Numbered from the stretch's first letter, positions 14,940 to 60,472 are shown. The stretch is DNA of 64,000 nucleotides from Selaginella moellendorffii (GCF_000143415.4 NW_003314333.1:880944-944943); one strand, 5' to 3'. Notes: a model not told the origin generated them from the sequence alone. Numbers and translations: made by a program.

Positions 14940-16958
14940 ATGGCGGGGCATGAATCGCGGCGCGGGGGCAGCATCGGCTTGCGTCGGAGCTCGTCAGCGC
15001 ATCATCATCGTGCGGGCGATGCTGCTGGCCCGCATAAGCTGCTTAGAACGGTCAGCCAGAGGTTGAGAGGTCTCATCAGCGGCGAGATCGTTGCCAGTGT
15101 CAATCACGGTAGCGGCAGGCTGTTTTTCGGGCGAGACTTCGATGATGATCGCCCCGGGGCTGCCAGGATCATCCACCAAGAACAGGCAATAATTGATCAT
15201 CACACGGGCAAGTCGAGGCCAGGTTTCTTCCTCAACTTCTCGCTGGGACAGAGATTTCCAGGAAGAACGCTCCAAGAACAGGAAGAGGAAGAGGCCGAGC
15301 TCCCAGAGGAACCAACACCCAGATGCTTTAGCAGGATGAGGAGCAGCCGCCGCGAGAAGCTACTCGCTTCTTCATTAGATCCAAGCGGCAGCGCTAGAAA
15401 TCTGTGCCGGGGATGCTTTGGGTCAACGATCCCTCCGGAAGAGCTGCCGGATTCATCGATGTTTGGACAGGATGATGGCCAGCAGCAGCAGCATTCCATC
15501 GTGCTCCCGGACGACGTTCTCGAGATGTGCTTGGCGAGGCTTCCATTCGATTCCCTGGTCCGAGCTCGCGCGGTGTGCAAGAAGTGGAGTTCCTTGACGC
15601 GCTCCTCGCATTTCTTGCAGCTCCGGGACAGGATGGGCTCCCCCCGGCCATGGCTCTTCGTGCTTGGGCTGTCGAGAGATGGAGTGAGCCTGGGCCAGAT
15701 TCAAGCCTTGGATCCCACTCTCGATCGGTGGCGCTCCATCCGAGCCGACGCACTGGCGGGGCGTTTGCTCTACTCGGTGGCGTCCAGTGGATCCAAGGTC
15801 TTCATGGTCGGGGGCTGCTCGGCGCGGGCCAGCAGCGACAGGGAGAAAGGAGGTTTCCTCAAGACTCACAGGAGCGTTCTCGTGCTGGATGCTTTCACCG
15901 GGCAGTGGAGCAAGGCCGGGATTGGAATGAAGAGCGCGAGGACCACTCCCGTGGTGGGAGTTTTCGAGATGACGCAGGCAATCAAGCTCAACCTCTTCGC
16001 AGCTCCAGAGAAGAAGACCACTAGCACCACCACCGCCACCACCACCAATCACAGGAGGATTGCCAAGAAGCGATCGGCAGAGATTGGTGTCTTCCGGGGA
16101 TCATCGTCCACAGGACCAGGTGGTGGCTCGTCATTCATGGATCAGATCTCTGCGCGACGCTGGCAGCGAAGTTATAGCTTCCGGGAGCTGACGACGAGCT
16201 TGGGATCATCGTCGTCAGCCTCGAAACCATCTGGCAGTAGCGGCAGCGGCAGCGGCAGTGGCAGCAACAGCGCTTTTGGATTGATCGTCATTGGCGGGCA
16301 GGACGAGCGGAACCAGACGCTTTCCAGCGGCGAGGTGTACGACCCATCGTCCAGCTCGTGGAGGGAGATCGCGGCGTGGCCGTGTACGGAGCTTGGATCA
16401 CTGTGCACGGGGGTGGTGTCCAAAGGCGTGCTTTACTGCTACTCGGACAGTGACAAGCTCGCGGCGCTGGATCTTGAGCGAAACTCCTGGCACGAGATCG
16501 CCATCTCGGCCTCGGGCATTCCCTCGCGGATCCAGGACTATCTCCCCAAGCTGGTGGTGTGCAAGGGCCGGATCCTTCTCGTGGGCGTCGTCTGGGCATC
16601 GAGATCACAGCACCAGATCAATGGGTTCGAGCAGCAGCAGCAGCAGCAGCCCAAGGTCGCGAGGAAGATCTGGCGATTGGAGCAGGATCGATCATCCTCC
16701 TGGCGGTGGAGCGAGGTGTCGCAGCACCCGGACGCGCCGCTCGACTGGAACGCGGTGTTCATCGGCCATGGCGACAGGATCTTCGGTGTGGAGATGTTTA
16801 AGATCTTCGGGCAGGTGCTGGATTTCGTGACAGTGTGCCAGTTCGCGGGCTCGCGGCGCAAGCGCGCGAGCTGGGATCGCGCGTCCAAGCAGAGAATGGG
16901 GCAGGACGTGGATTCCTCCTCGTGCCTCACCAAAGCAGCAGTCATCGTCCAGCTATAA
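14940..16958 (+). CDS. F-box/kelch-repeat protein, CFK1/CFK2 (At5g42350)-like, intronless
   Basis: 672-aa ORF with F-box LPDDVLEMCLARLP...VCKKW, kelch repeats (VFMVGG, LIVIGG...GEVYDP) and N-terminal LRTVSQRLR. Confidence 0.9.
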   Translation: MAGHESRRGGSIGLRRSSSAHHHRAGDAAGPHKLLRTVSQRLRGLISGEIVASVNHGSGRLFFGRDFDDDRPGAARIIHQEQAIIDHHTGKSRPGFFLNFSLGQRFPGRTLQEQEEEEAELPEEPTPRCFSRMRSSRREKLLASSLDPSGSARNLCRGCFGSTIPPEELPDSSMFGQDDGQQQQHSIVLPDDVLEMCLARLPFDSLVRARAVCKKWSSLTRSSHFLQLRDRMGSPRPWLFVLGLSRDGVSLGQIQALDPTLDRWRSIRADALAGRLLYSVASSGSKVFMVGGCSARASSDREKGGFLKTHRSVLVLDAFTGQWSKAGIGMKSARTTPVVGVFEMTQAIKLNLFAAPEKKTTSTTTATTTNHRRIAKKRSAEIGVFRGSSSTGPGGGSSFMDQISARRWQRSYSFRELTTSLGSSSSASKPSGSSGSGSGSGSNSAFGLIVIGGQDERNQTLSSGEVYDPSSSSWREIAAWPCTELGSLCTGVVSKGVLYCYSDSDKLAALDLERNSWHEIAISASGIPSRIQDYLPKLVVCKGRILLVGVVWASRSQHQINGFEQQQQQQPKVARKIWRLEQDRSSSWRWSEVSQHPDAPLDWNAVFIGHGDRIFGVEMFKIFGQVLDFVTVCQFAGSRRKRASWDRASKQRMGQDVDSSSCLTKAAVIVQL

Positions 16959-17019: not shown

Positions 17020-18376
17020 TTACAATATTGTGCAGCGCGAGTTCTTCATCTTTTCCTCGAATTCCTTCTCCCTGCGCTTGAATTCCTTCTCGAATCGCTT
17101 GCGCTCCTCCTCGAGCTTGATGCGCTCCTGCTCGAATCGCGCGCGCTCCGACTCGGCGTGCCTGCGCTGCTCCTCGGCACGCTTGCACTGCTCCTCCATT
17201 TTGGCCTCGGCCGCTATCGCGCTGCGCTTGGATTCCTCCGCGAGCTCCCGCAATTTGGCCAGCTCCTCCTCTTGCTCGGCCTTGTCCTTCTCATAGCTCT
17301 CCCGCAGTTCATTGATCTGCCAGTGAAGCGAGAGTTCTCTTAGCGCGCGGTGAGAACGTTTGAAAATATAAAACCTTTTGGGGGAAATTTTGCTCCAGCT
17401 GAGAGAGTCGATTCTCCATGCTCTCTTTCTTCTCTCGTGCTTCTTCTTGAGCCTGGAATCAATCCATTGAAATTTGGGAGGATGCGAGATACGCGAACTC
17501 TTACCTTGGCCAGCTCGAAGATCTCGGTGGTGTAAGGTATGCGGCTGTTGGCAGTGATCATCGTGTCAACAATCTCGAGAAGATCTCTCCGCTGCGCCTC
17601 CAGCTTTCTCTTGTCCTTGGATTTGTTGTCAAACAAAATCTTTCGATCGCCACACCGGTGGAGAAGATCCTGGAAACAAAAGAAGAACACTTTGAAGAAC
17701 ATAGCTGCGAAGGTGAGTACCTTGAGAGCTCCAGGAGTGCCATTCTGCGATAAGAACTCCTCCAGTGACGTTCCATCGCCATCGTCTTCGAGCGCGTCAC
17801 CATTCGTAAAGACGACGACGACGTAGTTCAAGACCCCGGATCCAAACATCTTCTCAAACGCATCCACGGCAGCGAATTCCTCCTCCGTGAACTTCGATTT
17901 GGCCGAGAGCACGAGGAGGATTCCGTGAAGCCCATCGCCAGCCAAATCCATACACTTGCCAATCTCTCTCGCGATCGACTTGGAATCGAGGGCGGTGTCA
18001 AACATCCCTGGAAAGGAGAATCTCTAGCAAAAAAAACTGCAAGCAAATCGCAGGTACCTGGAGTGTCGATGACGCGAATGCGTCGTCCATCGGGCCGTGT
18101 GATCTGCCCAAGCTCGCACACGCGCGTCACGGAGCCAAGGGACATCCTGGAGTTGAATCTCTTGCCGCCGAGGATGGAATTCCCTGTGGCGCTCTTGCCA
18201 CTGCCGGTTTTGCCCACTAGCACAAGCGTGGTGCTGCTAGAATCGCGAGGAGAGATTACCTCGGTGCCGCTCTTGGCAGCCTTGTAATCGGAGAAAGCCA
18301 TGCGATCGCTGCGAATCGGGGCGTCGTAGTCGCTGCCGCCGTTGCTGGGAACGTCTTCCCAGTCGCTAAGATCCAT
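17020..18376 (-). CDS. AIG1/IAN (GIMAP-family) GTPase with C-terminal coiled coil and CaaX (CTIL)
   Basis: [24 protein letters not shown]|[16 protein letters not shown] across short introns; ends RCTIL*. Confidence 0.93.
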
Positions 18377-18496
18377 CGTCCTTCCCTGACCTAAAAGGAA
18401 AGATCCTTACAAACAAGCTAAATTTGCAAATGGTTATGAAAATCGAAAGGGAATTCTCTACGATAGAGTTGTCATTTTCGGAAGCTCTTGCTCGAC

Positions 18497-19603
18497 TCAC
18501 AAATCTAATAATCTCTTTGTGCATGTGTCAGGGAATTGGAAGTTATTGAGATCCAGGCATAACACATCAACAAGAAGAAAAAAAGATGAAAGCGGATTAG
18601 CAGCTGACATGTGAAGATCTCTGTCTTTACATTTTGAAGAAATTGGAAGTATTGCATAGAACGAAGTCAACAAGAACTTAAGAGCTCCACTTAAAGGCCT
18701 GGAAAACCATTTGTCTGGATGGTAGACTCTCTCTTTTTCTTCGAACAAAGCACCACCATTACTTTCTTCGATCTCAGGATGGGAAACGGTTGGTCGGATC
18801 TGCCACTTGACATTTTCCACAAGATCTTCGAGCTGAGCCTTCAAGCGGAACTTGCTGGCATTGTCTAGTTTGTAAGTCGTGGAGGAGCAACACTTCGAGG
18901 CGCTGCTTTCAACGACTTAACATCTTCTGGCCGCTTCCTGGGCTAGAAGCGAAGCTCTGCAGCAAGCACAAGCGACAGCTCTTGCACTGCGACTGCATCC
19001 ATCTCCGCACTGATATCTCGTCTCCAAGAGGTCCACACTCTCAAGCTCCACAGCGTCCACAAGGCCTTGCAAGCTTCCAAGCTGACAGACTCCGCCTGGA
19101 TTAACATGACAAGCTCGGCGCGAGAGTTGGACCTCGTCCCGTGAACTTCCGAGTCTTGGAGCACATCAACCTCGAATCACTCAAGATCAAGTGCTTGCCA
19201 GTCATGGCACCGGACAGTGATGAGATTACTCCCGAGGCTCGGGGTGTTGTCTTGAGCAAGCTCCACACGCTGGCAATGGAAAGCTCAAGACCATCAAGCT
19301 TGTCATGCAAGGCCGCCACAGCTGGAAGCTTGCGATACTTTGCTCTTTATGTCGGAGCAAGGTCGTGGTGGTGGCCCGGGGATAGCAAAACTCGAGCACA
19401 CGAAAGGTGGTGGTAGACTCGCTCAAGCGGGTGGTGCTGTGGCCGGACTTTGGTGAGACTTTCTCGGAGTCCGGGAAGTTGTACAGCCTCTTCTCGACAA
19501 TGTCGCTGTGGAGGAGCGTGTTGTCCAAGCTAGTCGAACGTTTTTTCTTTTCACCCAGACCCAAAACTTGGCGAATTATATCTCGATCGCGTTTCACATT
19601 CAA
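18497..19603 (-). pseudogene. Fragmented coding-like region of unknown function (contains a YHPDK motif)
   Basis: Chain of short overlapping minus-strand ORFs with coding-like composition. Frame changes are not explained by obvious introns. Confidence 0.3.
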
Positions 19604-19758: not shown

Positions 19759-20883
19759 ATGGCCGCGATTTTTTCCGCTTGTGAGGCAGTACCGGAGAAT
19801 GTGGTTGCTCGATCGAGAGCCAGAGTCAAGATCGATGAGCGCGCGGCTCGAGCTGTCGAGCAGAAGCTGTTGCGATTCTCTTTGTTGACAGGGGACGAGG
19901 AAGATCAAGAGCTCACGCCGAGCGAGCTCATCATCGGTGATTGTCCCAACGCGGAAGCTTTCTCCCGGTGAGAAACTAGAAATAGGCAGTTGCTCCTATA
20001 ACGCAAATCTGCTTTTTCCGCTTTTCTTTCCAGGTGGGAATCAGGGCATAAGCGGTTTATCTGCGACTTCCTCGGCGGCAAAATCATCGCAAGGGAGCTC
20101 CCGAACAAACCCCATGGCCACGCTCAGCTGAAGGTGGGAGCTGCTTTTGATGCACAAGCAGCTGGATTGCTGTCCGTGGCTACGGCTGTCGGCTACAGGC
20201 CAGATGTCGGGGGAAGTCTCTACGTGCCTGATGTGGTTGTCAATGTTATTGGTGAGAGTAGTATCCTTCCACCGGGGGTGGCGGCAGTGCACGAGTATGG
20301 AGCCATCGTCATAGAGATCGCTACATCACAAAGGCCCAAGAATCTCCACGAGCGCGCAGCTATCTTCTTGGGACCCAATTACCCTCGATGTGCTATTTAC
20401 GTGGGTCTCAAGCGTTTCAATATGAGAGCCAATGGCACCATGGCCATGCTCGCTACAGTTTATGAACGACCGCCACCACCAGTAGCTGGAGCCGGAGGAG
20501 CAGCCGGAGGGGCGGCTGGAGGAGGTGGAGCACCGGGGCCGGCCGGGCCTGCTCCAGCCGTGCCTGTTCCAGGTGCGCCTGGCGGAGCAGGGCCGATGCC
20601 CATACGCTTAGTCTCCTTTGGCACAGGACCCTTGGGACCAAATGCGACTTGGAAAAATGACCCGAATCTCACAGGCATTGGAAGGAATGGAGTTCCGTTG
20701 ACCGGACCTGGAATTGCACAGTACGTCCTACGCTTTCCAGCACTTCAGGTGTTTTCGACTTTCGTCCCTCCTGGGGGAGGAGGAGCAATAGGAGCTCCCC
20801 CTCCTGGAGCTCCTGTTGATTATACGTTAGATCTCTTTTACGTTAAGGAGGCTTTTCTCAAGCCGAATGCACCAACGTATTAG
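19759..20883 (+). CDS. Uma2-like PD-(D/E)XK (restriction endonuclease fold) protein, one intron (~19968-20034)
   Basis: Spliced product ...SRWESGHKRFICDFLGGKIIARELPNKPHGHA...YVPDVVV...IVIEIATSQRPKNLHERA shows the G.I...P...H / PD / EIA.SQ pattern, plus a Gly/Pro/Ala-rich insert. Confidence 0.65.
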
Positions 20884-22590
20884 AAATTGAGTGTAGTAGT
20901 ATTGGAGAACTTTATAATCTTAGACTATAGTCTACTGCATTGATTTCTCTTTGTATCTTTGGCGTGGATGAAAAATTGTGAGCGTGTATGTCGATATGTC
21001 GAAGTGAAAGTTGGTGTTTTGCTTGTTCGTGTTCCTGTATGCATTTGTCTGTCAATGGTGGTGAGAAAACCAAGACAATGGTGTGGTGAAAAAAAAAAAA
21101 AACAAAGTAGAATAGAAAATGAGAAGAAACAAAAAGATCATGAGGAACTTTGCAATATCAATAAGAAGCATTAAAGTTGTTTAGCAAAATAGGTGTCAAT
21201 CTAAAATATAGCAGCAAGCTTGTTATAAAGATGGCATTTGAGCAGCCTAGTGGTTGTCTGTAATATTTTGCGTTACAGCATACGTTGATCAATATCTTTA
21301 TAATTTTCACACACATAGCTCCAAATTTAGAAAAACAAATTTGTAAATGGGACATAAAAAAACACAAATTGTACCCTAATCAATAATCACCATATTAAAA
21401 GTGTAGATTAACATTAAAATAGCATAATAAATATAACTATTTTTCTTAAGAAAAGCTATATAACAGTAGTGGATATATCTAGAATATGCTTGGATATTCT
21501 ACCATCCAATGGTTATTATTTATTTAGATTAATTTTGTAGTTATAATTTATAAACATATATTTAGTTTAGTATATTTTAGTTTATTTACCATTTAATGGT
21601 TCATATGCAATAAATATCTTGTGTTTATAAATTATGAACATGTTTATAATTATAAAATTCCAATTGATCAATTGAATTAATAAATATTACTAGATATGAA
21701 TAGCACTATTCCATATGTAATGTGCTTATATTCTACTTAACTTTCTTCAAACTAATTTAATAAAACACTCAAGTAGTAATTATTCATAAAAGTTCTGACA
21801 AAAAATCATATTTTTAATAATAATTTCTTCATCATACAACAAATTATAATTAAAAATAAAAATGTAATTTTCTGTCAGAAATAATTTGAGTATTTTTGTT
21901 AGATTACTTTTTATTTAAAGTACTTCACTTATATATTTAAATAAACAGATAATAGTAATACTATAATAGTTTTTAAAAATATTTTAACATAATTTTGTTT
22001 TTAGGGTTTTTACCATAAGCCGAGGTAGATCCTATTCACCGTAACAGTGGTGAAGGAGTTGTGATTGTACACAAAGAAAGTTGAGTCTTTGCTATATGTA
22101 CAACCCTTTTAAATTGAACCAATTTAAGTGTGTTTTCCTTTTATGAAACAGATTGAACACGATTGTTTCATGGATCTTGTGGCATTTCTTGGTCTATCAT
22201 AGGTTGAAGTAGATAGCCTGGGCGGAACATGCACACACAAACCCTATCCTTAGGATCTTATATCCACTCGGAACAAGTCAACAATACTTACGCAATCTAG
22301 ATGGTGGCGTTTTTCTATCATGAAAGACTATGGCCATCGCGAAGAGCTGATGCCTTTGCATGGCAAACAAAAAGAGGTGTATATCAAGGAAATCAGTGAA
22401 ATCATTTTGTGAAATCACAAGTTGATACATTTTAACAAAAAAGTCTAGATGCATAATGTGATGCATCACAATGTATCAACTAGAATATCCCTAGAATATA
22501 CCCACTATACAGCATTAGACTTCGCAAAAACTGTTAATCCCCTATACTAAGACTAATATACTATTGCTTCTTGGGTTTAGATTTGGGGGG

Positions 22591-22783
22591 TTGGGTTGTG
22601 CCAGGCTAAGGCGGTAGTGTAAGGCCGAAGCGACACGTGGAGGACCGGGTAGCAAGCTACCGGTGGCCCCCCTCCCACAAAAAATTAGGTTAATAGCGTT
22701 GGGGCACGTGGCCCCATATCAGCTATTAAACTGATAAGAACAGATACTACACTTGATCTTAGCCAAAAGGCCGAGAAAGGTAT
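22591..22783 (-). ncRNA. U2: U2 spliceosomal snRNA
   Basis: Reverse complement ATACCTTTCTCGGCCTTTTGGCTAAGATCAAGTGTAGTATCTGTTCTTATCAG, branch-point recognition GTAGTA, Sm site AATTTTTTG, ~193 nt. Confidence 0.98.
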
Positions 22784-41516: not shown

Positions 41517-44500
41517 AAACCTGTGAGTTACTACAACTTTTACATATTTTTATTGTTTCAAGTGGCCAACAGCTTTTAGAGGCGGCGATCTTAGCACACC
41601 GAATTGGAGATCACTGACGTTAAGCCTTGATTGCTGCCATAAGTTAATCCATATGTGCATAGTACTTGCTACTTGCTATAAACGATTTGCTATGCTCATT
41701 GTTAGAAATAGTATATAAAAACCACCAGACAATTCTGTGGGCAATACATGGCATCTTTAAATTGGACAGTGCCTGCGCAGAGACACAACTGATTTACTTT
41801 ACATTCAAGCTATCAAACGGAACATTTCAGTCTCTATCAACTTTGGCCGAATGAAGTTAACGTGGATTGTTGGGGTCGCAAGCAGAGCCATGCTGTGAGG
41901 GATTGACGATAAGGTTTCTCTTCTTTGAATATTTCCATGTCCACACGTTATGAAGAGGATATTGTCGTTTAAAAGCGAGCTTCATCGATCTGCTTGATTA
42001 TTTTTTTCTTCTTTTTCCACTTCGAAGAATGTCAGAAACAGAAGCATTGCTGCTGATGGTATGCTTCTTACTTGCTCACGCAGCAGCAGATCTCAATGAG
42101 GAGATGAGAGATTTTCTCCGAGACGTGAATCCTCCGTTTGTCATAAATCATACGGTTTGTTTTTTCGTTTTCAGATCCTTGTGAACAGTTATCAAATCGA
42201 GACATCATCCTCTGCGTCCCAATTAAAAATCAACTGTCTCTAAGAAACCAGACACTGCAGCTTCGGGTAAGTTGTCCAACATGGATGAAAACTAATGATT
42301 TCTCGTCTAGCCTGCTCAAATGATGAGCAAACAAGAGCACAATGGATCAGAAAATTCCGGTCAGCTGTTTGGTTTAGAAGTTGGATCGTGCAAGGAAAAC
42401 ACAATACCGGTGTTGCACACTTCGAATACCATAGTCGCAAGATTTGATTCTGTGAGGAAGCTAACCAAAAAACATTCCTCTGGAAAAAATCGAGTGCCAT
42501 TGGCTGATGAAGAACCTGGCGTAGAAACTCATGAGGTACTACAGTAATCTAGCAGGATCTGATCAAAACTCTCAAGAGTTGACAATACTTTGCATGATCA
42601 CGACAGCATGGCTACAACCAGTTGAACGGCAACTTCCAAGGGATGGAAACAACTATAAATGTTTGGGAGCCATACGTGGAACAAACTTCCGAGTTCAGTC
42701 TGTTGCAGTTGTGGATTATCTCAAACAAATTAGGCCCAGGTACTCCATAACACCATCCTTGCCACAGTGAAGCAGGATGGCAGGTGTGTTGAAATTTAGA
42801 TGTTTCTATACTGAACCTTGCTTGAAGGTTTATCCTAATTACTATGGAGGAACTGGGCCTCGACTCTTTGTCTACTGGACGGTAAATCAGATTGGTAATA
42901 AAACCTTTTATAAGCGTTGTCAATGGCAGGCTGATGGCTACAGAAATCAAGAAACTAGGAAAAATATCACAAGCAATCTCTCATGCTAGTAATCTCCATC
43001 AACACATTGTGACTGGACTCATGCTTAAGGATTAGCATGAGGCCTTATGCTAAAGTGCTAAAAAGATTTTGATTTGTCTAGTTTCTTGATGGTAATCTTG
43101 CTCAAATGTCTGTCCATGGGACAAGTAATATTATTATCAAGGAATTGGCAAAAACACCCCATCCATTCCTAAGTGTGAGGCTTTATGCTAATAACCTCCT
43201 ATAGAATTACCTCCACTGCCCCTTTCTTACGAGTCCTCATGCTATTAACCTCCTATAGAATTACTTCCATTACCCCTTTCACTTAGCATGAGGCCTTACA
43301 CTAGGATCCATTCTCTCCCATTTCAAAAATATTTTAAGTAATTCTAATAAGTTCTTTCATGTTTCTAGGCCTAACAATCTAAAACACTTCTACATGAGTC
43401 CATCAAAGTGAAAAGAGGCTGCAACTCCACATAACCACAAAAGTGGACATTAGAGATACAAGATGATGATCTAGTGTTGGTGGATCTTACCAACCCAAAT
43501 AGTCCAATAGTCTATGGGATTGTCATCAAAGAAGAGGAGATTCTTAACAAAGACATGAACAAGGAAGGAGGGCCATTTATACAGAGCTTCAAAAGACATT
43601 CATCAGGAATATTGTTCAAGACTCAGAGTTTATTCTGTCAACTACAATATAGTTTGCAAAGAAGGAATTGATACAACCTTCATTGCTTATGGAATCCTCA
43701 AGGACAGACTAACTTTGTCAAGAGCATTGTTGTTGTGGATAGTCAACAATAGGATTCTAATTGAGAGACTTTTTGATTAGAGGGAAATAGAAAAATTGGA
43801 GCATCCATTCCATGACCTCTCCAACTACAATCCAAATGATAAACATAATGTCAATCAGGTTGTTGATGATAAACATACATTAAGCAATACATCCTCATTA
43901 ACATCAACGTCCAATGATTAGGAGAGTGAGGATGATGAAGACAAGGTACAACACAATGATAATGAAGAGGATAATAGTGAGACAAAAAGTGACAAGTGAT
44001 AAAATTCAAGACAAGAGTCCTTCCTCATCATGAAAAGAAGAAGAAAATGATGATGAACCACCACAGAAGAGGATTAGATGTAAACTTTGGAGCAAGGTTG
44101 CAAGCAATAATGCATGGACGAGCCAAGGACAAAAACCTCCATACAAAGCAAGAAAAAAAAGTGTCACACAATAAATAAACCAAAAGATGGTAGAAATGAA
44201 GGCTCCAAAAAGAAGAGCAAAAGGGTGAAATGATGACAGCACAATTACAATAATAGGGGTGAAAAAAAAGACTAATGTCGACAAGACACCCTTGTTGAAG
44301 TACAAGCACTACTACTTCAATGATCAAACAATCTACAAACTCCTAATGTCTTGGTGCATCATTGATGCAACTCTTTGTTCACAATACCCTCAAAGAGCTA
44401 ATGATTGTATAAGAGAACTCAATGGATCTAGGTGATGCAATCCCAATCACTATGGACAAGGATGGTTAGACATTTGTCGAAAGGATAGGCAAGGAAACAA

Positions 44501-44741
44501 CAAAAAATCCAACAGTCAAATTCATTGTCATGTCTAGGCGGCACTTGACAAAAGCAATGCAAGAGATCTCTTTTGATCTAATATACACGAAGAAGATGCA
44601 GGCAAAATTCTCAATATGATACTTCTAAATCATGAAGGGGTCAACACCACAGGATACCATTATTGAGATATCCAATCTTGTGAACCAGCATAAGAGTAGC
44701 CTCAATGACAATCTTGTACATAGTCGCCACAACTAGAAGAG

Positions 44742-45897
44742 TGTAAGTGACTAATTTTTCCATTCTACTTTAGTTATTTAACCACACCTTTGACCACTTG
44801 GAGGAGTCTTATTCACAACCTCCATAAGTTCAATTCAGAATTTGGGATTTGCTAGATCCAAGAATGGCATCTATGCTACTTAACTTTTGGACTTGGTCCA
44901 AGTGCTTCACATGTTTGATCCCATGATCAACACCCCAAGGTACCACCAACATATTAGCCCGTTACGCTAAGGCCATGCTTATTCACTTTGGTCACATTGG
45001 TGGTCCAACACTACTTGCATCGCAGTCCCATCTCTCAAAGACTGGGCCATCTGTCTATGAAAGACCATCTAAGATCCATTCCCTAGTATCCCACTACCAC
45101 TGGAACAAAGCCCACAAGCCCGACCACTAAGTTCCACTGTCCTTTGGGACTTCCTTACCACATGACCATATCCTTGGTCACTACACTAAAGGACCATTCC
45201 TCTTCCTTTCCATAGTCTAGGACTTTAGGACAATATTTTGGAACATCATGGCCTTATGTAAGCCTCATGGGTACTCTCCCCACTTTCTGCCTTTGGGTGC
45301 TCTAACTATGGGCTTAGAGTGAGGTTCCGTTTAGCCACGCCAGATATCCAAGTAGGTAGTGCCACCCACGCTTGGACTGGGAGCATCAACCATTCAATCT
45401 CCCGGGGGAACTAAAGCCGGCTCTTGAACACTTTACCAAGTTACCCCCCTTATCAATTTGTATTCACTTTAGCTTTGGACTTCCCAGTGGTTATCTCATC
45501 ACCCAACAGCTCAGACACCATCTCGGGTCCATCTCGGACTCCATCTCAGGTCCATCTTAGACTCCATCTCAGGTCCATCTCGGGTCCATCTCGAACTCCA
45601 TCTCAGACTCTATCTTGGGTCCATCTTGGACTCTATCTTAGGTCCATCTCGGACTCCTTCTTGGACACTTTCATATATCATGTGTTGGTCCTCTTGTGTC
45701 CCTTTTCTAGAGACTCCTTTATTGCTCACTTCATGCTTGTTCTTCAAACACTTCGTTGGGAGTTCCACTCCCACTCTCGACCTTTCAAGTTGGAGTTTTT
45801 AGTCCAAACATGTTATGCATATTTGGCTTTCGCTTTAGCCACTACCACATGGCACACTTTTGGCTCCATTTTGGGGCTTAGGGATTTGTGTCTCACA
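44742..45897. mobile_element. LTR-like segment related to the solo LTR at 9769-10910
   Basis: TGTAAG start with a similar following sequence, ends TCTCACA, similar length (~1156 bp), same CATCTCGGACTC-type tandem array at ~45515-45660. No TSD found. Confidence 0.6.
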
Positions 45898-46692
45898 ACT
45901 CTACCACCCATAGATGAATTTCGATGTCTTCATCGAATGATAAATTATTTTATAAAGTAATACTAGTATGTATTACCCTTTCCATCCTTGGCACCTAGCC
46001 AATATTCGTCAATTGTTTGACACTGAAGGCTCATTATGCCTTGTCCATCCTCCAAAAAGCATAATCTCTCTAACATAAAGACTCGATCGACCACCTATGG
46101 TGGTTCTCTCCCTTTCATTGGTTTAGTTTTTACTAAATCTATTTGAGATGCTTCCTCTATCTCAATCCCATTACTTATTCTTGAATAGTCTCAACTTCTA
46201 TTGATATAACCATTTCACTTTAGAACTTTTGACAAAAATTCAACAGTCAAAAAGGAAACTTTGTTACATCCATAGATGTAGTTTAATATGCCAACTATAA
46301 AAGCAAGAAATCTAAAAGATATCAATCAAATGAAGTACCTACATGGCTGCTTGTAAATAATCAAATAGAAGAGAAGGAAATGTTTTAAGAGAGACACCTA
46401 AGCTCAGGCTAAATACATATATATGGATTTACTATATATGACTATACCTGAATTTAAAATAACTGAAATAATAATAATTATGCCTTTTTAAACTAAATTT
46501 CTTAAATAAACTTAAATATGGATTGTTGTGCACTCAACGTCGTCAACACATTATCTATGCCGTTTCCCTTACTGTCACCAATAGAGAATCCAGTCACCTA
46601 CCAAAGGAAAACCAGAATCGTAAGACTCCCTTTGTATCAAAGTCTAGCTGAATCGCACTTGGAAAGCCTCCTTTACCACTAAATACTAGTGA

Positions 46693-49371
46693 TCACATCT
46701 TTCTCGTACACTTTTTGGTATGCCTTACAGCTGCAATCTGCTCGATCATACCAAAATTGGAGCCGATAATAACACTTGAGGCATATATATCCATCGGATT
46801 AGACTTTTGATATGAGAGAGCTGATGAATTGTCCTTGTCCGAGAAAAATACATATCCAAAGTTCGTTCGAGCATACTCTACAAAAAACAAAAATTAAAAA
46901 TAAACGAAAAATGTATAACGTATGGACTTACTTTCATCGCCAGGCTGCTCATTGTCCTTGATAGCAATCAGTCGTCGGACGTCACTCTTAAGATTTCGAA
47001 CGACTTCCGACCAATCCGCAATGGCTGGCTTAAGAGGGTCTCCAGAGCACTTGCTTTGGATGTACAAAAGAAATGGCTCCAAATCAATGCCTTTTACTTC
47101 CTCGAGTATCAGGAAGGTATCAGCCCCGCTGTTCCGAGGTCCACAGATGGCCCAAGTCCCTGACCTTTGAACCTCCTCCTTTGAGCCTGGACTACTGTGT
47201 TTGATCCGAAACCAAAAAACTAAAAACAAGAACATACCTGGACTTAGTTGCTTGATTGAAACTGGAAAAGTGGGGAACCTGAACTTTCGGTTCTTCAGAT
47301 TGTCAGGGATGTACCAATCGCAAGGCAACACATCCGCCAGCATGAAGGTGTCTGAACCCCCCGATAGTAACTGCAAATAACATGTTAGTAACCGAGACTA
47401 TGAAAGACTATGAACGTAGAATTCACATACCTTATGAATGTAGATGCTGAAGATCAGAGACAACAAATCGTTGTCTTCCTTCTGCTTCCAATCATCCGTT
47501 GACATTGTTGTCAAATCAAAAGTTGTAGAGCCAAAAAGGTCCTCCCGCTGGAGTGTTAGCTTATGCAGTAACACAGGTGAAAACTCCACCAGAGCCTTTT
47601 CTTCGTCAAGAACCACAGCCACTACTCCACAACTCTCCAGAGCTTCCCATGTCAAAACATTCTCTCTTGGAAAGGCCTGCAGCAGAATCGGTCCATTCCT
47701 TGAGACATGCTCACGAAGCATCGATGCTTGAATTGCTCGTAAGAGATAAGAAAATCTCTCATCCCCGGCAAAGCCATTGTAATACTTGAATCTTCTGCAT
47801 AGGCTCCACACACGATCCAGAATCTGCCTTACTTTGTCTCTCAGGAAGGGCTCCTGAATTCTCAGCGCAAGGTTGTCAATGTCAAGGGCCATGTCTGGGT
47901 CATCTGAAGCCAAAGCCTGAACCATGAAGGTAATCAACCTCGGATTCCCTCCGCTCAGCTTGCACAACAGCTGCATGCCATCATTTAAAGCATGAAGTTC
48001 TTCACGGTTTGAAGTCCTCAGCACCTTGTTAAAGACTTGCAACACCAGCTTCTCCCGATCGCTGCTGCTGAGAGGGTTGACAGGAATATAAATCACTTCA
48101 GATGATCCACTGTCACCGCTCTCTCTCAAAGATGCCGCTGTGAAAAGGTTGGTCGCTCCGAGCATAGTGACGAACGTTTTGCCACCCACGTTCCTGTACT
48201 TCCAAACTATGAACTGCCGAAACAGTTTCTGAACAAGGACGTTGCTCCTCCCAATCTCATCAAAGAAGAACGACAGGAAAATGTTTTGGTCTCCGAGCTC
48301 GCAGACTTCTCGCAACAAAGCTATCACGTCATCAAACAGGAGGAACTTCTTCAAATCAGGTGCTTCGGTATCAACAACAGCGACAAGCTCTTGGTAAGGA
48401 AAGCGCGTCCAAGTCCCAGTATCTTTTCTGATGTCATCTTGGCCATCTGCTCTAGAAACAGCTGCATGCAAAGTCCTCAGGGCCAAAACCTGAGCATCAC
48501 CCAGCCCGGCCTCGCCATGAAAAGTTGAAATAAAATCATGGTACATGAGCACGTCGAGATGTTCAACGGTGCTCATCATGGCATCCCACGGTCGCACCTC
48601 ATCGGTTGATGTATCGAAAAGTGAGGCAAGTTCTTGAATCCTTAGCCCTGGATCACTCCGTTGCCTTCTCATCTCAATGAGTATTTGTGGGAGTGCCTTG
48701 CCAAGGGATGTTTTTCCCGCACCCGGGAATCCAACCACACCCATTATATGGTGGAGGCGCCTAAACACATCCCAGTCTGTGTGTTGACTGCTCATGAATT
48801 GCTTGTACAACAGCCAGTTACCCCTGAGCAAAGCATCCACAGTCTTCTCTCGTCCAACAATGGGAAACTGCTGCCCGATGTCCTTCAGAGACAAGCCAGT
48901 TGGCAAAGAAGATAATGAATCCCTTTCAAGGCATTTTCTGTACGTGCGGGCATGCTTAAGACGAGGTCCAAAGAGCTCCTTCAGCTTGGCAATCCGATCA
49001 CGGGCGTTTGACCAAACAACTCCACTAGAGGGAATGAGCTGCTGACGGAGCTGCTTCTCCTTCTCCATCCAGTGCTTCTGAAGCTCACGGAGCTGCTTCT
49101 CCTTCTCCATCCAGTGCTTCTCCTTCTCCATCCAGTGCTTCTGAAGCTCACCCTGCGTGGAATCCACCTTCTGGCCAGCGCGCTCCACCTTCTGCTCAAC
49201 CTGCTCAATCGCTTGTTGCACGGCCCTGATCTCCGATTCCACTTCCTCAATCTGCTGCTGAATCGATCGCTCAGGCCCATCCGCCCTTTGCCGCTTCCCA
49301 GCCCTGATATCTGATTCCAATTCTTCCCCATCCGCCCTTGGCCGCTTCCCATGAGACTGCTCTCGCACCAT
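46693..49371 (-). CDS. Crinkler/CR-type protein: N-terminal repeats/coiled coil + STAND/AAA+-like NTPase + PD-(D/E)XK REase domain; about four exons
   Basis: 657-aa first ORF with FPIVGRE, Walker A GFPGAGKT, Walker B FLSFFFDE and GGNPRL. Downstream exons give NSGAD...LLYIQSK nuclease motif. Last-exon splice site is uncertain. Confidence 0.75.
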
Positions 49372-49559
49372 GGCGGAACCCTAACCGAGGTACTCTGATT
49401 TTTAGGGTTCTAGCCGTAGAATGGGACATTGTGCGAGGCGAGCTTCGACTGCATTCGATGTGAGGTTGGTAGAAAACACCTGAAACTGGCATTGAGGTAT
49501 GTTCAGCTGAATCTGTGAAATGGTGTAGACCTTACTGATTTTACCTGCATTCGGGCAGG

Positions 49560-51270
49560 TAAACTGGAGTAGGTTCACGTAGAAAAGAACTAATGTTGAC
49601 TACTCATTCAGAGCGGCAGTGAGTATATGGCAGGACAGCTTCAGGCTTATGGCCATCTCGGACTCTCCTCAGAGAGCTGATCTTTGGCTGATCAACACGT
49701 AAGTTCAGTATCAGAAGGAAGAATCTTAAGCTGGATCAATTGTTGCTGCTGTTTTATTCGCAGGTGTACTGTGAAAGCTCCGACAATGGGAACACTGATA
49801 CGTAAAGGCAAAGCAGCCTCTATTCCCTTGGTGGATAGCTGGATGCGTTCCTCAGGGTTTAAAAGATCTCGAAGCTGTCAGCGTCATCGGAGTGCAGTAA
49901 ATACAGCGGGGGAGACTTTGAAAGGCCACGAGGCCCGGCTGCTTCGACGGGATGCTTTACCGTCTCTTGATTTGCCAAAAGTTTATAATCTCTTTTGCTG
50001 TTGTGTTTTCAGGTTCGTAAGAACAAGTTTGTCGAGATCATTCCTATCAACGTTGGCTGCTTGGGTGCTTGCACATACTGCAAGACGAAGCATGCTCGCG
50101 GGCATCTTGGCAGCTACACAGTAGACACACCAGTAAGGACCTTCGCCAGTTTCTTTTCTCTGTTACTGAGCTTTATCTACAGGTGCAAAGATTGAAAACC
50201 GTGGTGTCTGAAGGTGTGAAGGAGATATGGCGACACTGGAGCTTACGGTTATGGCTATCTGTTTCAAGCTAGCATTTTTTATTTACTTTTTTCTTTCTTT
50301 GCACTACAGGACGAGACATTGGAGCAAATATACCAGCGCTTCTACGTGCTTTAGTTGCCGTGCTTCCTCATAGACAGAAGTACAATGCTCCGAATCTACA
50401 TCTTACAGCATCTGGAGGAAATGGCTGTCACCCCTGCGTGTATTCGTTCCTTCATGTTCTGGTTCAATCTGGAAGGGACTCGGTGTTGGAGGTACCGATG
50501 TTATGGGTGATTGTTTTGTCTCTGTAAGCTGTTTTCTGTGTTCTTCAGGGCATGAAGAGGGAGTACACGTTTTCCGAGTTTAGAAAAATTGTGGATACTC
50601 TCACAAGACTAGTCCCAGAGATTCATATCGCTACAGATATTATCTGTGGATTTCCAGGTACACTCGCATGCACGAAAAAGATTGTATCTTATTGAGCTTT
50701 TATCCTTGTCAGGGGAAACATCAGAGGATTTTGACAGGATCATGGAACTAATACGAGAGTGCACGTTCCCACAGGTCCACATATCACAGTTTTACCCTCG
50801 ACCAGGTAGGTAATCTCTGTACATGCTACTGAATGGTTCTCTCTGTCACTAGTGTTTATCCTGTCAATATCCTTAGACAGGAACACCGGCGGCTCTAATG
50901 AAACGGGTTCCAACGCTCGAAGTGAAGAAACGAAGCCGTTCCTTGACAAGTCTGTTCGAATCGTTCACTCCTTACGCAGGAATGGAGAAAACGTACCGAG
51001 TCTGGGTCACCAACACTGCTGCTGATGGAATTCATCTGGTATTCTTTCTTTTGTTCTACGTCTCTGCAGGTTGGCCTGTGTACAAGTTCTACTTCCAGCT
51101 GTACCGGGCCTTCTTGGAAGCAAGTTAATGTGAAGATTACGTCTGTCGGAAGATGGTCTGTGACTGGCGAGTGGCGAACCAGATTCCACTCCTGGAGACG
51201 ATGCTGAGAAAGTCGGATGCGAGCAGCGGTAAGGAATGCGATCCTCGGGGAGTTCCTGAGAAAGAGATCC
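49560..51270 (+). pseudogene. CDKAL1/MtaB-type radical-SAM tRNA methylthiotransferase pseudogene (introns retained)
   Basis: [38 protein letters not shown] (CxxxCxxC), [32 protein letters not shown]; frameshifts and deletions. Confidence 0.88.
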
Positions 51271-51439
51271 CGAGTTCGGGCATCACATTTTCGTTTGTTG
51301 AAATTCACCAGGATCAGAAGCGGCAGGCTCTGTGGTCACTCTTGTGGCTTTCTTTACACACTCCAGAAGAAAACAAGCTCAAGGACGAGTCTGTGCAACG
51401 CTCGCACAAACTCGACTGGGCGCAATTGGGAGCTCCAAC

Positions 51440-52010
51440 CAGAGTCCAATCTCCGCTATCCCAGATGAGGTGTCTTTACGTCAATGACGGTGAGAGACTT
51501 ATCTTCATCAAGACAAGTTTGCAAGCACTGGTACGCTCTGTGTTCATCAGACTGTCTGTGGGAGAAATTCGTCGGCTCAGGTCAAGCCAACTTACCAAGG
51601 TACGTGCCTCCTGACTATACTATTTTCTGGAAATTTTGTTTTCCTTGCTTAAACGTTGAATTTTGCAGATGGCTGGTGCATAAGCACAGCACGCTACTGT
51701 CGTCTCGAAGCACTCGCGTTTTATATTTCACAAACAGATACACGTTTCTGATTCAAGCCTTGGATGCATGGTGGGAATACGGGATTTACAGCTCCTCTAA
51801 GCTGTGTCCTCTTATATGAGAGCTTACGCTGCGCGACTGGTGTGTATTCTATGAAGTGCTAAGCTCCGCTTTTGCGAATCGTGCAGATTTCCTATCTGCC
51901 TCACTTCTGCCAAAGCTTCACAGCAGATTGAATCTGTACGACCTGGAAGGTGTGTGTTTGGATGACGGAGTCACTGGGATGAAAATCTGGAAGGTGCTGC
52001 GTGACCTCTG
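51440..52010 (+). pseudogene. F-box gene fragment
   Basis: MTVRDLSSSRQVCKHWYALCSSDCLWEK F-box-like motif followed by a disrupted frame. Confidence 0.5.
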
Positions 52011-52105
52011 ACAGCGTTATATCTCATGGGTGAAAGTTTGCCTGCACTGCTCGGACCTTAATTATGCAGTCCGACGGTAAGTGGCATTCACGCTGGCTGT
52101 TGGAT

Positions 52106-53835
52106 CCTCCACCGTTGGATTGTACAGATTTAACAGCTCAAACGCTCAGCCTTTGAGTTGCCAGAAATTTCTAAGTCCTAGCACTTGGTTTTTGGCAATG
52201 GAGAGGAAGGTACGTGAGCATGGCAGTTACACCTTGAGCACGCCACGGCCAAGGTCACCACAGCCAGCTGCTCCAGCAGCAGCAGCAGCCGCCGATGCAG
52301 GCAGCGCCAGCCACTGCAACAGCCCGCGGCCTGCCAACACCAGCAGCTGCTGCGGCTGCTGCTCCAGCCGGCCAGCCAGCCGTGCCACGGCCGGCCTCCA
52401 GCGACCGCCACAGCGAGCACTTGGGCCAGCACTCGCCGCCCAAAGCGCCAGCCCTGTGGCTCGTCGTGGCCCAGCCCGTTAGCACTGCGTCCCGGCCAGC
52501 CGCTGCCCAGCAGCACCACCCCGAGGCAGCAACCACCAAGGGATCTCCAAAAATGCTAAGGGGATTGCTCCCTGCTGTTGAGAGCACCCGCACCACCCAG
52601 ACATCACCACAAAGCTGCTATGATCCACCAGAATCTGCCGTGGGAGACACAATTGCAACCGCAATTGCAAATGCCCGCCTCTGCTTCTCCAGCATCCTCT
52701 CCACCGTCAGATCTCCCGATCCAACGGTCCACGTGGTCCAAGCCTGAATCGTACTTAGATTTTTTCTGGGCTATGGAGGAGAAAGATGCAAGGAGCAGTC
52801 ACGACAGGGCATTCTGTCTTGACCACGCCACAACATCAAGCCAACAGCAAGCCAGGACAACTCCAAGCATGGTTCTGGATTCAGAGAAACCAGCCATGCT
52901 GCCCCTCTCTCCCCTCGCCAGGGTCTGACACAGCAAGTCTCCAAGCCAGGCATTTGCATTGGCCCCTGTGTGCCGCACCTCGCTGCCACAGTGCCACAAA
53001 AAATCCCTACCTGGAGATGCTCACTGCCACTAAGAGTCTGGGAATTAGCTTGGCTTCTCAACACAACAATCTCTTTGGTGTTTCCTGCGGCCCAGCTCCC
53101 CTGAATCGTGTCTGGCACAGCAAACTCCCCACAAAGGCTTTTTGCCCCCTTTTGGTCCAGTGCCTTGGCACCACCAAGAGATCATAAAAATGCCAAGGGA
53201 GCTGCTCCCTGCCACACAGACGCACCTCGCTGCCACAGTGCCACAAAAAATCCCTGCCTGGAGATGCTCACTGCCACTAAGAGTCCGGGAATTAGCTTGG
53301 CTTCTCAACACAACAATCTCTTTGGTGTTTCCTGCGGCCCAGCTCCCCTGAATTGTGTCTGGCACAGCAAACTCCCCACAAAGGCTTTTTGCCCCCTTTT
53401 GGTCCAGTGCCTTGGCACCACCAAGAGATCATAAAAATGCCAAGGGAGCTGCTCCCTGCCACACAAAGCACCCACACCACCCAGAGATCACCATAGAAAT
53501 GCTGTGCCTCACCAAAATCCGCCATGGGAGAAGCCTTTGCAACAGCAACAGCCATTGCAAAGGCCCACTCATGCTTCCCTCTCCTCTCTCCTCCACCGTC
53601 GGATCGCACAGATCCAACGGCTCAAACGCACAGCCTTTGAGTTGCCAATAATTTATAAGTCCTAGCACTTAGTTTTTTGGCAATGGTAGAGGAAGCTATG
53701 GGAGCATGGCCACTGCGTCTTGAGCACGCCATGGCCCAGGCCACCATAGCCAGCTGCTCTAGCAGTAGCAGCTGCTGACACAGGCAGCGCTAGCCATTGC
53801 AACAGCCTGCAGCTTGCTAGCACCAGCAGCTACTG
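52106..53835. repeat. GC-rich repeat block: ~240-bp direct repeats (52106-52350, 53590-53835) enclosing a 247-bp near-perfect tandem duplication (52975-53221, 53222-53466)
   Basis: Identical short ORFs offset by 247 bp (53108/53355); shared CTCCACCGT...CAGCCTTTGAGTTGCCA...AAGTCCTAGCACTT segments. Confidence 0.88.
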
Positions 53836-55129
53836 CATTGTGGGAGTGATTGAGGCGAGGAAGAGGGACGTCACCAGCTGCATTGGTCCTCCACTTGCTT
53901 CGCTGGAGTGACTATAGCAAAGGATGAGCTCTTTTTCTCTCTCACGGCTTGGTTTTCACTCTTTTTCTCGTTTCGACTTCATGGCTAACACAATCTTATT
54001 CACTTATGCAATAAACATGGATGCAAAGGAGATTGGTGTCGAAAAACTAGGCTAGAGGAAGTGGGTGGGCTTTTTTTCTTGGTGTGAGGCCTCACACTAA
54101 TGTTTTTGTGTGAGGTTGGACACTATCTATTTGTAGATTGGATTAAGGTATTATGGAGGGATGAAGTCATTTTCTTGGCATGAGGCCTCATGCTATTCAT
54201 TTATATGCATTTGTTTCTTACTACTTTAGGTGTCTAGGTGAGTAATCTTACTCGCCAATTCATGGCTGCTATAACCTGCACTGCGAAGGCTTTGTACAAA
54301 CAAGCAACAAGTACATACTAGGAGGATCATTTTCGAGCGTATCCACTCCAGACTCTACACAATATGAGAAAACCTTACATGTTTTCCAGGTCCATAGTCC
54401 AGACTATGTAAAAAACATGCATAAAAGCTATTAAATGGTTTTGAATTTTTCAGGACGATAGCTCAAAGAATTGGTGGCTACAAATTGACGGGGAAAGTAT
54501 TGGATACTGGCCTGCAAGCCTTTTTCAATCTCTACAGAATGGTGCTGAGACATTGGAAGCTGGCGGTGAAGTCTGCTATGATAAAGAAAGTGGAGTAAGA
54601 CACACAAAGACTGGTATGGGAAGTGGAGAATTTCCATCCCAGGGATATCTTAAAGCTGCATACCAGAGAAGAATATAGTACCTGGATTCCAATGGAGTAA
54701 TGCAGCCAGCAATTGGGATGAAAAGTGGAGCTGAAGTACCTAAATGCTACACTGCTACTAGTGTTGCTGCTGACAAGGGAGATGACTGGGGTGCATATTT
54801 CTTCTTTGGAGGCCCTGGATATAGCAACCAGTGCCCATAAACCTTCAATGAATGACAAAAGGCAAAAAAGTTTATAACCTGAAATAAAAATATTAACAGA
54901 TTTTATGACATTTTGAGAACAAGCAAGAAAATATAAAAGGATGTAGTCCCGCTTTTAGATCAAGACAATCTGAAAAATTCTCCATCAAGAAAGGGCATTC
55001 CAGCTCCAGGCCTCTACCACCGAACTATACTAATGCCGCTCAATCAATGCTACAACATAATAAATTAGTACCTGAATCCAAGCAAAAGGTCATTAATTTG
55101 CTCTATCCTTAACATCTTCGGGTCATGCC

Positions 55130-59149: not shown

Positions 59150-60472
59150 GCAAATACACCTTTGCATTTTTCAGGCACTGCCAGGGCCTCCAAAGAAGAA
59201 ATATGCCCCATTCATAGCCGAGACACTAGTAGCAGTATAGCATTTAGGTGTTTCAACTTCTCTTTTCATCCCAACTGTTGGCTGCATCGCACCACTAGAA
59301 TCCAGGTACTGTATTCTTCTCTGCTATGCAAATTACCATATCCCTGGGATGGAAATTCTCCACTTCCCATATCAGTCTTTGTGTGTCTTGCTCCATTTTC
59401 TTTATCATAGTAACTTCCAAAGTGTCATTCTGTAGAAATTAGAAAAGATTTGCAAGTCAGTGTCCTATAGTTTCCCGTCAATTTTGTAACCACCAATTCT
59501 TTGAGCCATCGTCCTGAAAAATTCAGCCAAGGCTTAAGCAACAAATACATACTAGGAGGAACATTTTCGAGCGTATCCACTCCAGACTCTACACAATATA
59601 TGAGATAACCTTACGTGTTTTCCAGGTCTAGAGTCTGTACAGGTTATAGCATCCAGTATTAATGTAGCCATCGGCCTGCCAAATGTTGACAATTCTTATA
59701 AAATGTTTTATTACCAATCTGATTTACTGTCCAGTAGACAAAGAGTCGAGGCCCACTTCCTCAAGGTTCAGTATAGAAACACTTGAATTTGCTTCAATTG
59801 TGTTCACTGGGCCTAATTTGTTTGAGGTGATCCACAACTGCGCCAGACTGAACTCGGACGTTTGTTCCACGTATGGCTCCCAATCATTTCTAGTTGTTTC
59901 CATCTCTTTAAAGTTGTCGTTCAACTTGTTGTAGCCATGCTGTTGTGATCATGCAAAGTATCGTCAACTCTTGAGAGTTGTGCTCAGATCCAGGTTCTTC
60001 ATCAGCCAATGGCACTCGATTTTTTCCATAGGAATTTTTTATGATTAGCTGAACCAAATCTTGTGGCTATGGTATTCGAAGTTTGCAACACCGGTATTGT
60101 GTTTTTCTTGCACGATCCAACTTCTAGACCAAACAGCTGACCAAAATTTTCTGATCGATTGTGCTCTTTTTTGCTCATCATTTGAGGGGCTAAACGAGGA
60201 ATGCTGCACAACTTACCAGAAGCTGCAGCGTCTGGTTTCTTAGAGACAGTTGGTTTTTAATTGGGACGCAGAGGATGATGTCTCCATTTGATAACTGCAA
60301 ATCGGAATCTATGTGTTCACAAGGGTTTGAAAAAGAGGAAACAAACCGTATGATTTGTGAAAAACGGAGGAGTCACGTCTCAGAGAAAATCTCTCATCTC
60401 CTCATTGAGATCTGCTGCTGCGTAAGAATGTAAGAAGCATACCATCAGCAGCAATGCTTCTGTTTCTGACAT
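59150..60472 (-). pseudogene. Inverted neprosin pseudogene copy with an empty insertion site and an internal micro-inversion
   Basis: Same ATGTCAGAAACAGAAGC start; WEPYVEQTSEFSLAQLW; contiguous ADGYINTGCYNL at ~59635-59676. Confidence 0.88.

Follow-up and report, generated by a model that had tools for sequence, protein, structure and literature searches.

In a 64,000-nucleotide stretch of the Selaginella moellendorffii genome (GCF_000143415.4 NW_003314333.1:880944-944943; hereafter the window), an exon of a neprosin gene is interrupted by an 11,313-bp block at positions 42947-54259, with the trinucleotide TCA flanking it on both sides. The left portion of the split exon (42930-42946, plus strand, ...ADGYR N) belongs to an upstream open reading frame (ORF) with a Pfam Neprosin match and is annotated as a separate fragment of 122 amino acids (aa); the right portion (54260-54389, plus strand, HGCYNL...) is annotated as a separate 116-aa Neprosin fragment. 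The exon breaks at 42946|42947 in the sequence ...GCTGATGGCTACAGAAA|TCAAGAAACT..., and the junction at 54259|54260, where it resumes, reads ...CTTACTCGCCAAT|TCATGGCTGCTATAACCTG. Junction alignments place the two copies of TCA at 42947-42949 and 54260-54262, which gives four equivalent cutting registers; the right copy is read as one half of a duplication, and the left copy either as the other half or as the first three nucleotides of the element itself. When the block is excised in silico and a single TCA is retained, the exon aligns without gaps across the junction with a minus-strand paralogue at ~59.6 kb of the window (GGCTACAGAAATCATGGCTGCTATAACCTG against GGCTACATTAATACTGGATGCTATAACCTG). 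The spacing Y-x3-GCYN, which is typical of the neprosin family, is maintained in this paralogue, and exactly one TCA is therefore derived from the host. Two events would give this result: a 3-bp duplication, or the arrival, next to a TCA target, of an element that itself ends in TCA. The initial annotation of the window had described a discrete insertion splitting the neprosin exon, with the paralogue as its empty site and with junctions that could be read as a TCA duplication or as insertion between A and T; the exact junctions and the gapless alignment bear out this description, and both readings fit the junction sequences. The paralogue itself is irregular at ~59540-59660, where ~100 bp directly past CTATAACCTG are inverted relative to the interrupted copy, and it may be rearranged or a pseudogene.

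The window was compared with eight Selaginella loci (L001-L008), all of them fetched around annotated proteins. One of them, L002 (GL377637.1:917445-940314), is 100% identical to the window, and GenBank enters the neprosin gene there as two separate fragments, one on each side of the block. Another, L008 (GL377630.1:814088-836757), carries the same insertion with identical junctions in flanks that are 96-97% identical to those of the window, and is a diverged copy of this region, whether as the alternative haplotype or through duplication of the segment. Since the junctions are identical in this diverged copy, the insertion predates the divergence and the junctions are not an assembly artefact, a possibility that the initial annotation had left standing. 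The insertion is thus old, real and exactly bounded. No uninterrupted neprosin allele was found among the loci compared.

Locus comparison divides the block into a left arm of 1.4 kb (42950-44344, plus strand; 'block A'), a two-gene cassette of 9.3 kb (44345-53645) and a right terminal module of 270 bp (53990-54259, plus strand), referred to below as module M. The ends of the block carry no terminal inverted repeats (TIRs): the first 60 nt match the reverse complement of the last 60 nt no better than shuffled sequences do (z = -0.7). Neither CACTA nor CTRR is present at either end, and no register yields CTRR; in the duplication register the ends read AGAAACT... and ...CGCCAAT, and in register 0 the element begins with TCAAG and finishes with ...CGCCAAT. 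Repeat analysis and folding energy identify the left end as a foldback of ~147 nt (42946-43090, plus strand; -23.1 kcal/mol, z = -3.8), formed by 18-nt inverted arms at 42946-42963 and 43073-43090 (ATCAAGAAACTAGGAAAA / TTTGTCTAGTTTCTTGAT) around 109 nt, the stem of which takes in the TCA together with the A before it. It is within this foldback, at 43078-43090, 130 bp inside the 5' end and not near the 3' end, that the 5'-terminal 13-mer has its inverted partner; module M holds the 13-mer in direct orientation only, at 54041. At the 3' end, an 8-bp hairpin, GTGAGTAA-TCTT-TTACTCGC (54237-54256, plus strand), pairs 54237-54244 with 54249-54256 and stops 3 nt short of 54259; judged by its folding energy, it is genuine though of low stability (-5.1 kcal/mol, z = -3.5). 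In the element ORFs tested, which are a subset of the block's ORFs of 70 aa or longer, no Pfam domain of a transposase, Rep protein or helicase was detected. On all these points—the lack of inverted, CACTA and CTRR termini, the hairpin 3 nt from the 3' end and, for the ORFs tested, the lack of a recognisable transposition enzyme—the earlier description of the block was accurate. Scans of the element against Rfam and for tRNA genes gave no hits, nor did an exact scan of metagenome contigs for the 3'-terminal 23-mer.

The two ends share a palindromic motif, with the core GCATGAGGCCTCATGC, of which each arm holds several copies, those on the left within ~350 bp of the element's end and those on the right within ~190 bp. 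Repeat and motif analysis places the left subterminal copies (core GCATGAGGCCTYATGC) at 43032-43052, 43170-43190 and 43283-43303, and those of module M at about 54080-54100 and 54175-54195. A further left copy, ~30 nt from the end, is found in L008, L003 and L004 and is damaged in the window by an 11-bp deletion. With up to three mismatches allowed, the palindromic 16-mer has three matches in the 64-kb window, all of them in the element ends, against 0.29 expected. The segment 43091-43400 was considered as a diverged direct copy of module M and dropped, its alignment being barely above shuffles (z = 4.3 in forward and 3.2 in reverse orientation) and its score being driven by the palindromic motif.

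Both outer parts of the block, the left arm and module M, occur together at only two sites among the loci compared: the site of the window and L008, and the site of L003 and L004. The latter two loci have the same flank beside module M and were counted as a single insertion context. Their module M, 97.8% identical to that of the window, extends through ...CTCGCCAAT and TCAT, and the homology then ends at an unrelated flank. The homology to the left arm starts in L003 and L004 at the same nucleotide as in the window and is preceded by ATCA in L003 and ATTA in L004, the element start reading TCAAG in the window and L003 and TTAAG in L004. In both independent contexts, (A)TCA precedes the left boundary and TCA(T) follows module M, which suggests a preference for TCA targets, or that TCA is part of the recombining ends. 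The order of the parts differs between the sites: in window orientation, L003 and L004 show a flank, the reverse complement of module M, the left foldback, the left arm and the cassette. The concern raised at the outset, that the termini might never be paired elsewhere, is thus answered in part—they recur together once among the eight loci, and do so in an arrangement other than left...right. L003 is without ~545 bp of the left arm, equivalent to about 43374-43917 of the window, by a deletion between CAAT microhomologies; on these grounds the gap (~43372-43978) was ruled out as the boundary of a nested element. In L004, a direct repeat of at least 1.9 kb (1-1880 and 17214-19085, 97.6% identity) stands on either side of the entire region of element and cassette and suggests that ~17 kb were duplicated in tandem.

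The cassette between the arms is 95-97% identical to dispersed copies at L001 and L003-L007. It holds a gene for a putative NTPase-nuclease, identified by GenBank annotation, motif and fold search (SELMODRAFT_425221, 857 aa, 46502-49371, minus strand), and a divergently transcribed second gene with F-box-like and Radical_SAM matches in Pfam (686 aa, 49649-52747, plus strand). The initial annotation had recognised one intact NTPase-nuclease gene among host gene fragments; the gene does appear intact, and the rest of that account gives way to the two complete genes annotated in GenBank. L001 contains the equivalent of 44345-53645 at 95-97% identity, with the outer parts wholly absent. The arms and the cargo have separate histories, since the inner 9.3 kb occurs without arms at L001, L005, L006 and L007; the left arm (42950-44344) is found with the cassette only at the window, L008, L003 and L004. 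The stretch shared with the window runs from 42949 to 52075 in L003 and L004 and from 44259 to 52075 in L005, while L006 and L007 hold two inverted copies each, equivalent to 45585/45844-50244 and 46347-52460/52520, respectively. The inverted pairs are head-to-head and tail-to-tail (L006 9127-13756 and 15901-20277; L007 75-6026 and 6985-12997; L005 with a junction at 15310/15330), and the two copies of each L006 pair and each L007 pair do not differ in exon 1 of the NTPase gene. Elsewhere in L007, a separate palindrome flanks a gap of N characters at ~17.9-19.3 kb, and the assembly of this locus may not be fully reliable. L003, L004 and L005 have in common a 4.4-kb fragment of a copia-type long terminal repeat retrotransposon (gag, SH3_retrovirus) in the second gene, at the equivalent of position 50244, where both L006 copies stop; the cassette copies are therefore related by segmental duplication and not by separate transpositions. 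Smaller repeats within the block include a 23-bp tandem array (CATCTCGGACTCCATCTCAGGTC-like; 45507-45661, plus strand) in the 3' flank of the NTPase gene, which is present in every cassette copy that reaches the region, and a 247-bp tandem duplication detected by repeat analysis (52974-53465, plus strand); the sequence at 53433-53836 consists of older internal duplicates of 52105-52674.

In a rival account without a transposase, microhomology-mediated repair or template switching would have filled a double-strand break in the neprosin exon with a piece of a repeat-rich gene cluster, and TCA, ATCA and TCAT would be junction microhomology. The variable boundaries, common nested insertions and inverted pairs of the cassette copies show segmental and fold-back duplication and not transposition; at L003/L004 the left 'terminus' lies inside a longer unbroken structure, and each junction has 4 nt (ATCA, TCAT) common to host and donor-like sequence. 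Against this, module M ends at the identical nucleotide at two loci with unrelated flanks, which is hard to obtain from random breakage, transposon-type palindromic sites are clustered at both ends, and no colinear donor arrangement exists among the loci compared. We regard such a repair origin as unlikely.

The palindromic motif connects the ends of the block to a candidate enzyme. In L001 its core occurs nine times at 17.5-22.4 kb, against 0.08 expected, the exact 16-mer included, and this cluster lies in and around a 741-aa ORF with a match to Pfam DUF7869 (E = 6e-41). The ORF also has a sub-threshold N-terminal match to TNP1/En-Spm (PF03017), and several other DUF7869 proteins show a similar weak match. 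Invariant blocks HDKMD, LDN and GHTHEDID in DUF7869 homologues form a DDE-like pattern. The family is highly multicopy, with more than 500 confirmed loci in metagenome contigs, many of them on contigs from a few sample series; this copy number is a transposon-like abundance. DUF7869 is accordingly a candidate transposase family for the element. The L001 copy itself is probably not intact: a 568-bp tandem duplication (20400-21267) repeats the 5' part of its ORF. Copies of the palindromic motif at 19818-19900 lie within the ORF, probably in an intron, and an interstitial telomere-like repeat, (TTTAGGG)3, is found at 22740-22770, just past the DUF7869 element region.

Because the same palindromic 16-mer is found at both ends of the block and around a DDE-like ORF, the evidence points to a cut-and-paste family. 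Our favoured interpretation, to which we give slightly less than even odds (a probability of about 0.45), is that the block arose long ago through insertion of a composite, non-autonomous, cargo-carrying DNA transposon of the cut-and-paste type, served in trans by a transposase of the DUF7869 type. Two transposon-derived arms would bracket a captured 9.3-kb host segment with its two divergently transcribed genes. A DUF7869-type transposase, supplied from elsewhere, would bind the palindromic subterminal sites and cut both ends of the element, and integration would proceed by a 3-bp staggered cut with a preference for TCA. The two-gene cassette would have been acquired between the arms, while it also spreads by ordinary segmental and inverted duplication, and its NTPase gene would stay open yet evolve fast, in the manner of an immune or conflict-type gene.

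Several observations weigh against this interpretation. A DDE transposase normally requires TIRs, and the element has none (z = -0.7, as given above). The putative link to DUF7869 is made by a single kind of evidence, a common motif of 16-20 bp. DUF7869 has no sequence match in PDB and no match in NCBIfam, its structure model is weak (predicted local distance difference test score, pLDDT, of 59), and the model gives only marginal matches to an RNase H-like fold of the PIWI/IscB type and to a BAH/SH3-like barrel. No mention of DUF7869 was found in the literature. Repeat analysis of the DUF7869 element in L001 for termini and target duplication turned up only copies of the motif and what are probably exon repeats, and no clear ends. 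The same search over 80 metagenome loci (L009-L088), with copies 70-89% identical, gave boundaries that are fuzzy or run into adjacent copia elements; in one AT-rich metagenome family the right end is sharp (...AATGAAATATGTGTTAT), with no obvious inverted match to the left end and no two-ended copy. The second locus is not a clean left...right copy either, since module M in L003 and L004 is not at the far end and abuts the left terminus in inverted orientation. This layout fits a full-length element with inverted 285-bp copies of module M at both ends and a window copy from which the left one is gone; on that view, how the window form transposed would call for an explanation. The layout fits equally a terminal module M that has become joined to different upstream DNA. 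Finally, the independent insertion contexts number just two.

Among known families, the element would work most like gene-carrying non-autonomous CACTA/En-Spm elements, such as Tpn1 of morning glory and the Tgm-type elements of soybean. It resembles them in the 3-bp duplication and in the several subterminal repeats at both ends, and would do so in the capture of its large host-gene cargo and in the dependence on a transposase in trans, for which the candidate family has a weak TNP1/En-Spm-like N-terminal match. It differs from them in lacking CACTA...TAGTG termini and TIRs, in the palindromic form of its subterminal sites, in a candidate enzyme that matches DUF7869 and not the TnpD-type Pfam Transposase_21, and in the presence of the same TCA in both independent contexts. 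PIF/Harbinger elements have short TIRs, a DDE_Tnp_4 transposase and a 3-bp duplication of TWA (TTA/TAA); the duplication here is TCA, TIRs are absent and no DDE_Tnp_4 was found in the ORFs scanned. Mutator-like elements (MULEs) provide a precedent for DDE-mediated mobilisation without TIRs in their non-TIR, VANDAL-type forms, and for host gene segments between transposon arms in Pack-MULEs. The block shares the non-inverted ends and the host genes between arms; MULE target duplications are, however, ~9 bp long against the 3-bp TCA, no MULE/MuDR domain was seen, and the cargo consists of two whole genes and not of fragments.

The same ends can be read in terms of rolling-circle transposition. 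A Helitron-like element would start with TC, insert between A and T without duplication, end at a 3' hairpin and carry captured host genes, and module M would be a 3' terminator that read-through or chimera formation had linked to other upstream sequence. In register 0, a host A stands before the initial TC of the block and a host T after its last nucleotide in both contexts (A|TCAAG in the window and L003; CAAT|T in the window and L003/L004); it has no TIRs, a hairpin beside the 3' end, a large cargo and a module M attached to different upstream sequence at two loci. A parallel for the cargo is found in Phytophthora, where Crinkler-type genes for an NTPase joined to a restriction endonuclease (REase) sit in Helitron-rich regions in head-to-tail arrays (review, PMC5289972). 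Measured against canonical Helitrons, the block has the 5' TC start, fails two of five features (the 3' CTRR and the Rep/helicase gene) and is ambiguous in two of five. Insertion at A|T is compatible with register 0 and indistinguishable from a 3-bp TCA duplication, and the hairpin, which in Helitrons is GC-rich and ~10 nt upstream of the 3' end, is here a weak stem of 8 bp at 3 nt from a terminus that reads CAAT. No Rep (HUH) or PIF1-like helicase was found in the scanned element ORFs or in the long ORFs of related Selaginella loci, a genome-wide search not having been made. Both ends, moreover, share palindromic repeats with each other, as Helitron and Helitron2 ends do not, and with a DDE-like element, and the CAT that follows the required T beyond module M at both loci would be a 1-in-64 coincidence. 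The initial annotation had offered, beside an undescribed gene-capturing element, one like the Helitron2/Helentron group, which is characterised by an asymmetric TIR, with the 5'-terminal 12-15 nt inverted near the 3' end, and by a T|T target. The Helitron2/Helentron label is not supported: the partner of the 5' 13-mer is on the 5' side, T|T arises in no register, the 3' terminus reads CAAT and the scanned ORFs contain no Rep/helicase. We consider a Helitron-like origin very unlikely. The block stands as a gene-carrying, well-bounded insertion with atypical ends.

The NTPase gene is the plant's own and appears intact. A 657-aa ORF within it (47398-49371, minus strand) has 90-98% identity to a set of S. 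moellendorffii proteins, and at least 21 annotated proteins of the family with at least 90% identity are found on scaffolds of nine different lengths. The protein has a coiled-coil N-terminus, a Walker A motif GFPGAGKTS in a STAND/AAA+-like core, and a beta-rich C-terminal domain. The fold of the core matches Apaf-1, the NB-ARC domain of plant NLRs and ORC/Cdc6 (E = 1e-4 to 1e-3; model pLDDT 60). The C-terminal putative nuclease domain has no database match; a GxDxF...IQSK motif in this region is retained in the majority consensus of distant homologues, and in the model residues 700-790 form an alpha/beta core. When 1.8 billion representative proteins were searched exhaustively and without profiles, just 19 relatives were returned, and those looked up are mainly from Selaginella, with one fern, two Klebsormidium species and one marine transcript. 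A ubiquitin-like (Ubl) domain lies upstream in one Klebsormidium homologue, and a kinase match is found in one Selaginella paralogue. Exon 1 (1.9 kb) is free of stop codons in all ten copies compared, with pairwise ratios of non-synonymous to synonymous substitution rates (dN/dS) of 0.4-2.3, a pattern that would fit a fast-evolving gene kept open and not decaying cargo. Between the window and L008, exon 1 (47440-49371) is 99.5% identical (dS 0.007), against ~96% for the flanks and ~94% for the element ends, which suggests gene conversion among copies or strong constraint.

In its architecture the NTPase protein resembles, by description and not by direct sequence comparison, the Crinkler or CR-type NTPase-HTH-REase proteins (HTH, helix-turn-helix), which according to a review of Zhang et al. 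2016 (PMC5289972) occur in land plants and in free-living eukaryotes. Both have a P-loop NTPase followed by a helical or winged-helix region and a C-terminal nuclease-like domain, putative in the Selaginella protein; both belong to lineage-specific, multicopy and fast-evolving families, and the upstream Ubl domain of the Klebsormidium homologue is like the headers of CR proteins. The Selaginella protein has a coiled-coil N-terminus in place of the Ubl header, and its putative nuclease motif is D...QxK against D...(D/E)xK in the REase-fold domain. According to the same review (PMC5289972), modules that combine an NTPase and an REase originate from prokaryotic transposable elements. The cassette might conceivably be mobile by itself, with its NTPase-nuclease as a mobility enzyme comparable to the TnsA/TnsC-type pairs of NTPase and restriction-endonuclease-fold proteins in prokaryotic transposons, and with the inverted dimers as replication products. 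The number and scaffold distribution of the near-identical proteins and the head-to-head and tail-to-tail pairs would agree with this. The boundaries of the cassette, however, differ at every locus with no common termini, the only clean insertion uses foreign arms, the fold matches suggest a signalling or immune NTPase, and distant homologues are fused to Ubl or kinase domains, as in Crinkler-type proteins. A self-mobile cassette is, on this evidence, highly improbable.

A further possibility is that the block represents a plant mobile element of a kind not yet described, with no inverted termini, foldback and hairpin ends and an obligatory TCA at the junctions (A-TCA|...|TCA-T), moved either by DUF7869 enzymes acting on the palindromic sites or by a strand-specific HUH-like mechanism, and serving as a vehicle that spreads a Crinkler-type, immune-like NTPase-nuclease cassette. 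Elements of the IS200/IS605 type and other HUH elements have hairpins at both ends, a fixed short target on the left, no target duplication and a Y1 HUH transposase. The block has a foldback at one end and a hairpin at the other, and in both contexts one TCA stands ahead of its left end and another completes its right end; the ORFs scanned contained no HUH gene. We hold this possibility to be quite unlikely.

Should the block prove to belong to a known superfamily, as an aberrant copy or one with a truncated end, it would be a well-documented but unremarkable gene-disrupting insertion. If the favoured interpretation of a composite transposon is true, it would be a plant transposon that moves two complete, still-open genes rather than gene fragments, and DUF7869, which is highly multicopy in plant-like metagenome contigs, would stand as a candidate transposase family. 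It would also provide a concrete route for the dispersal of fast-evolving NTPase-nuclease genes, a class represented among Crinkler effectors and in conflict systems, in an early-diverging land plant.

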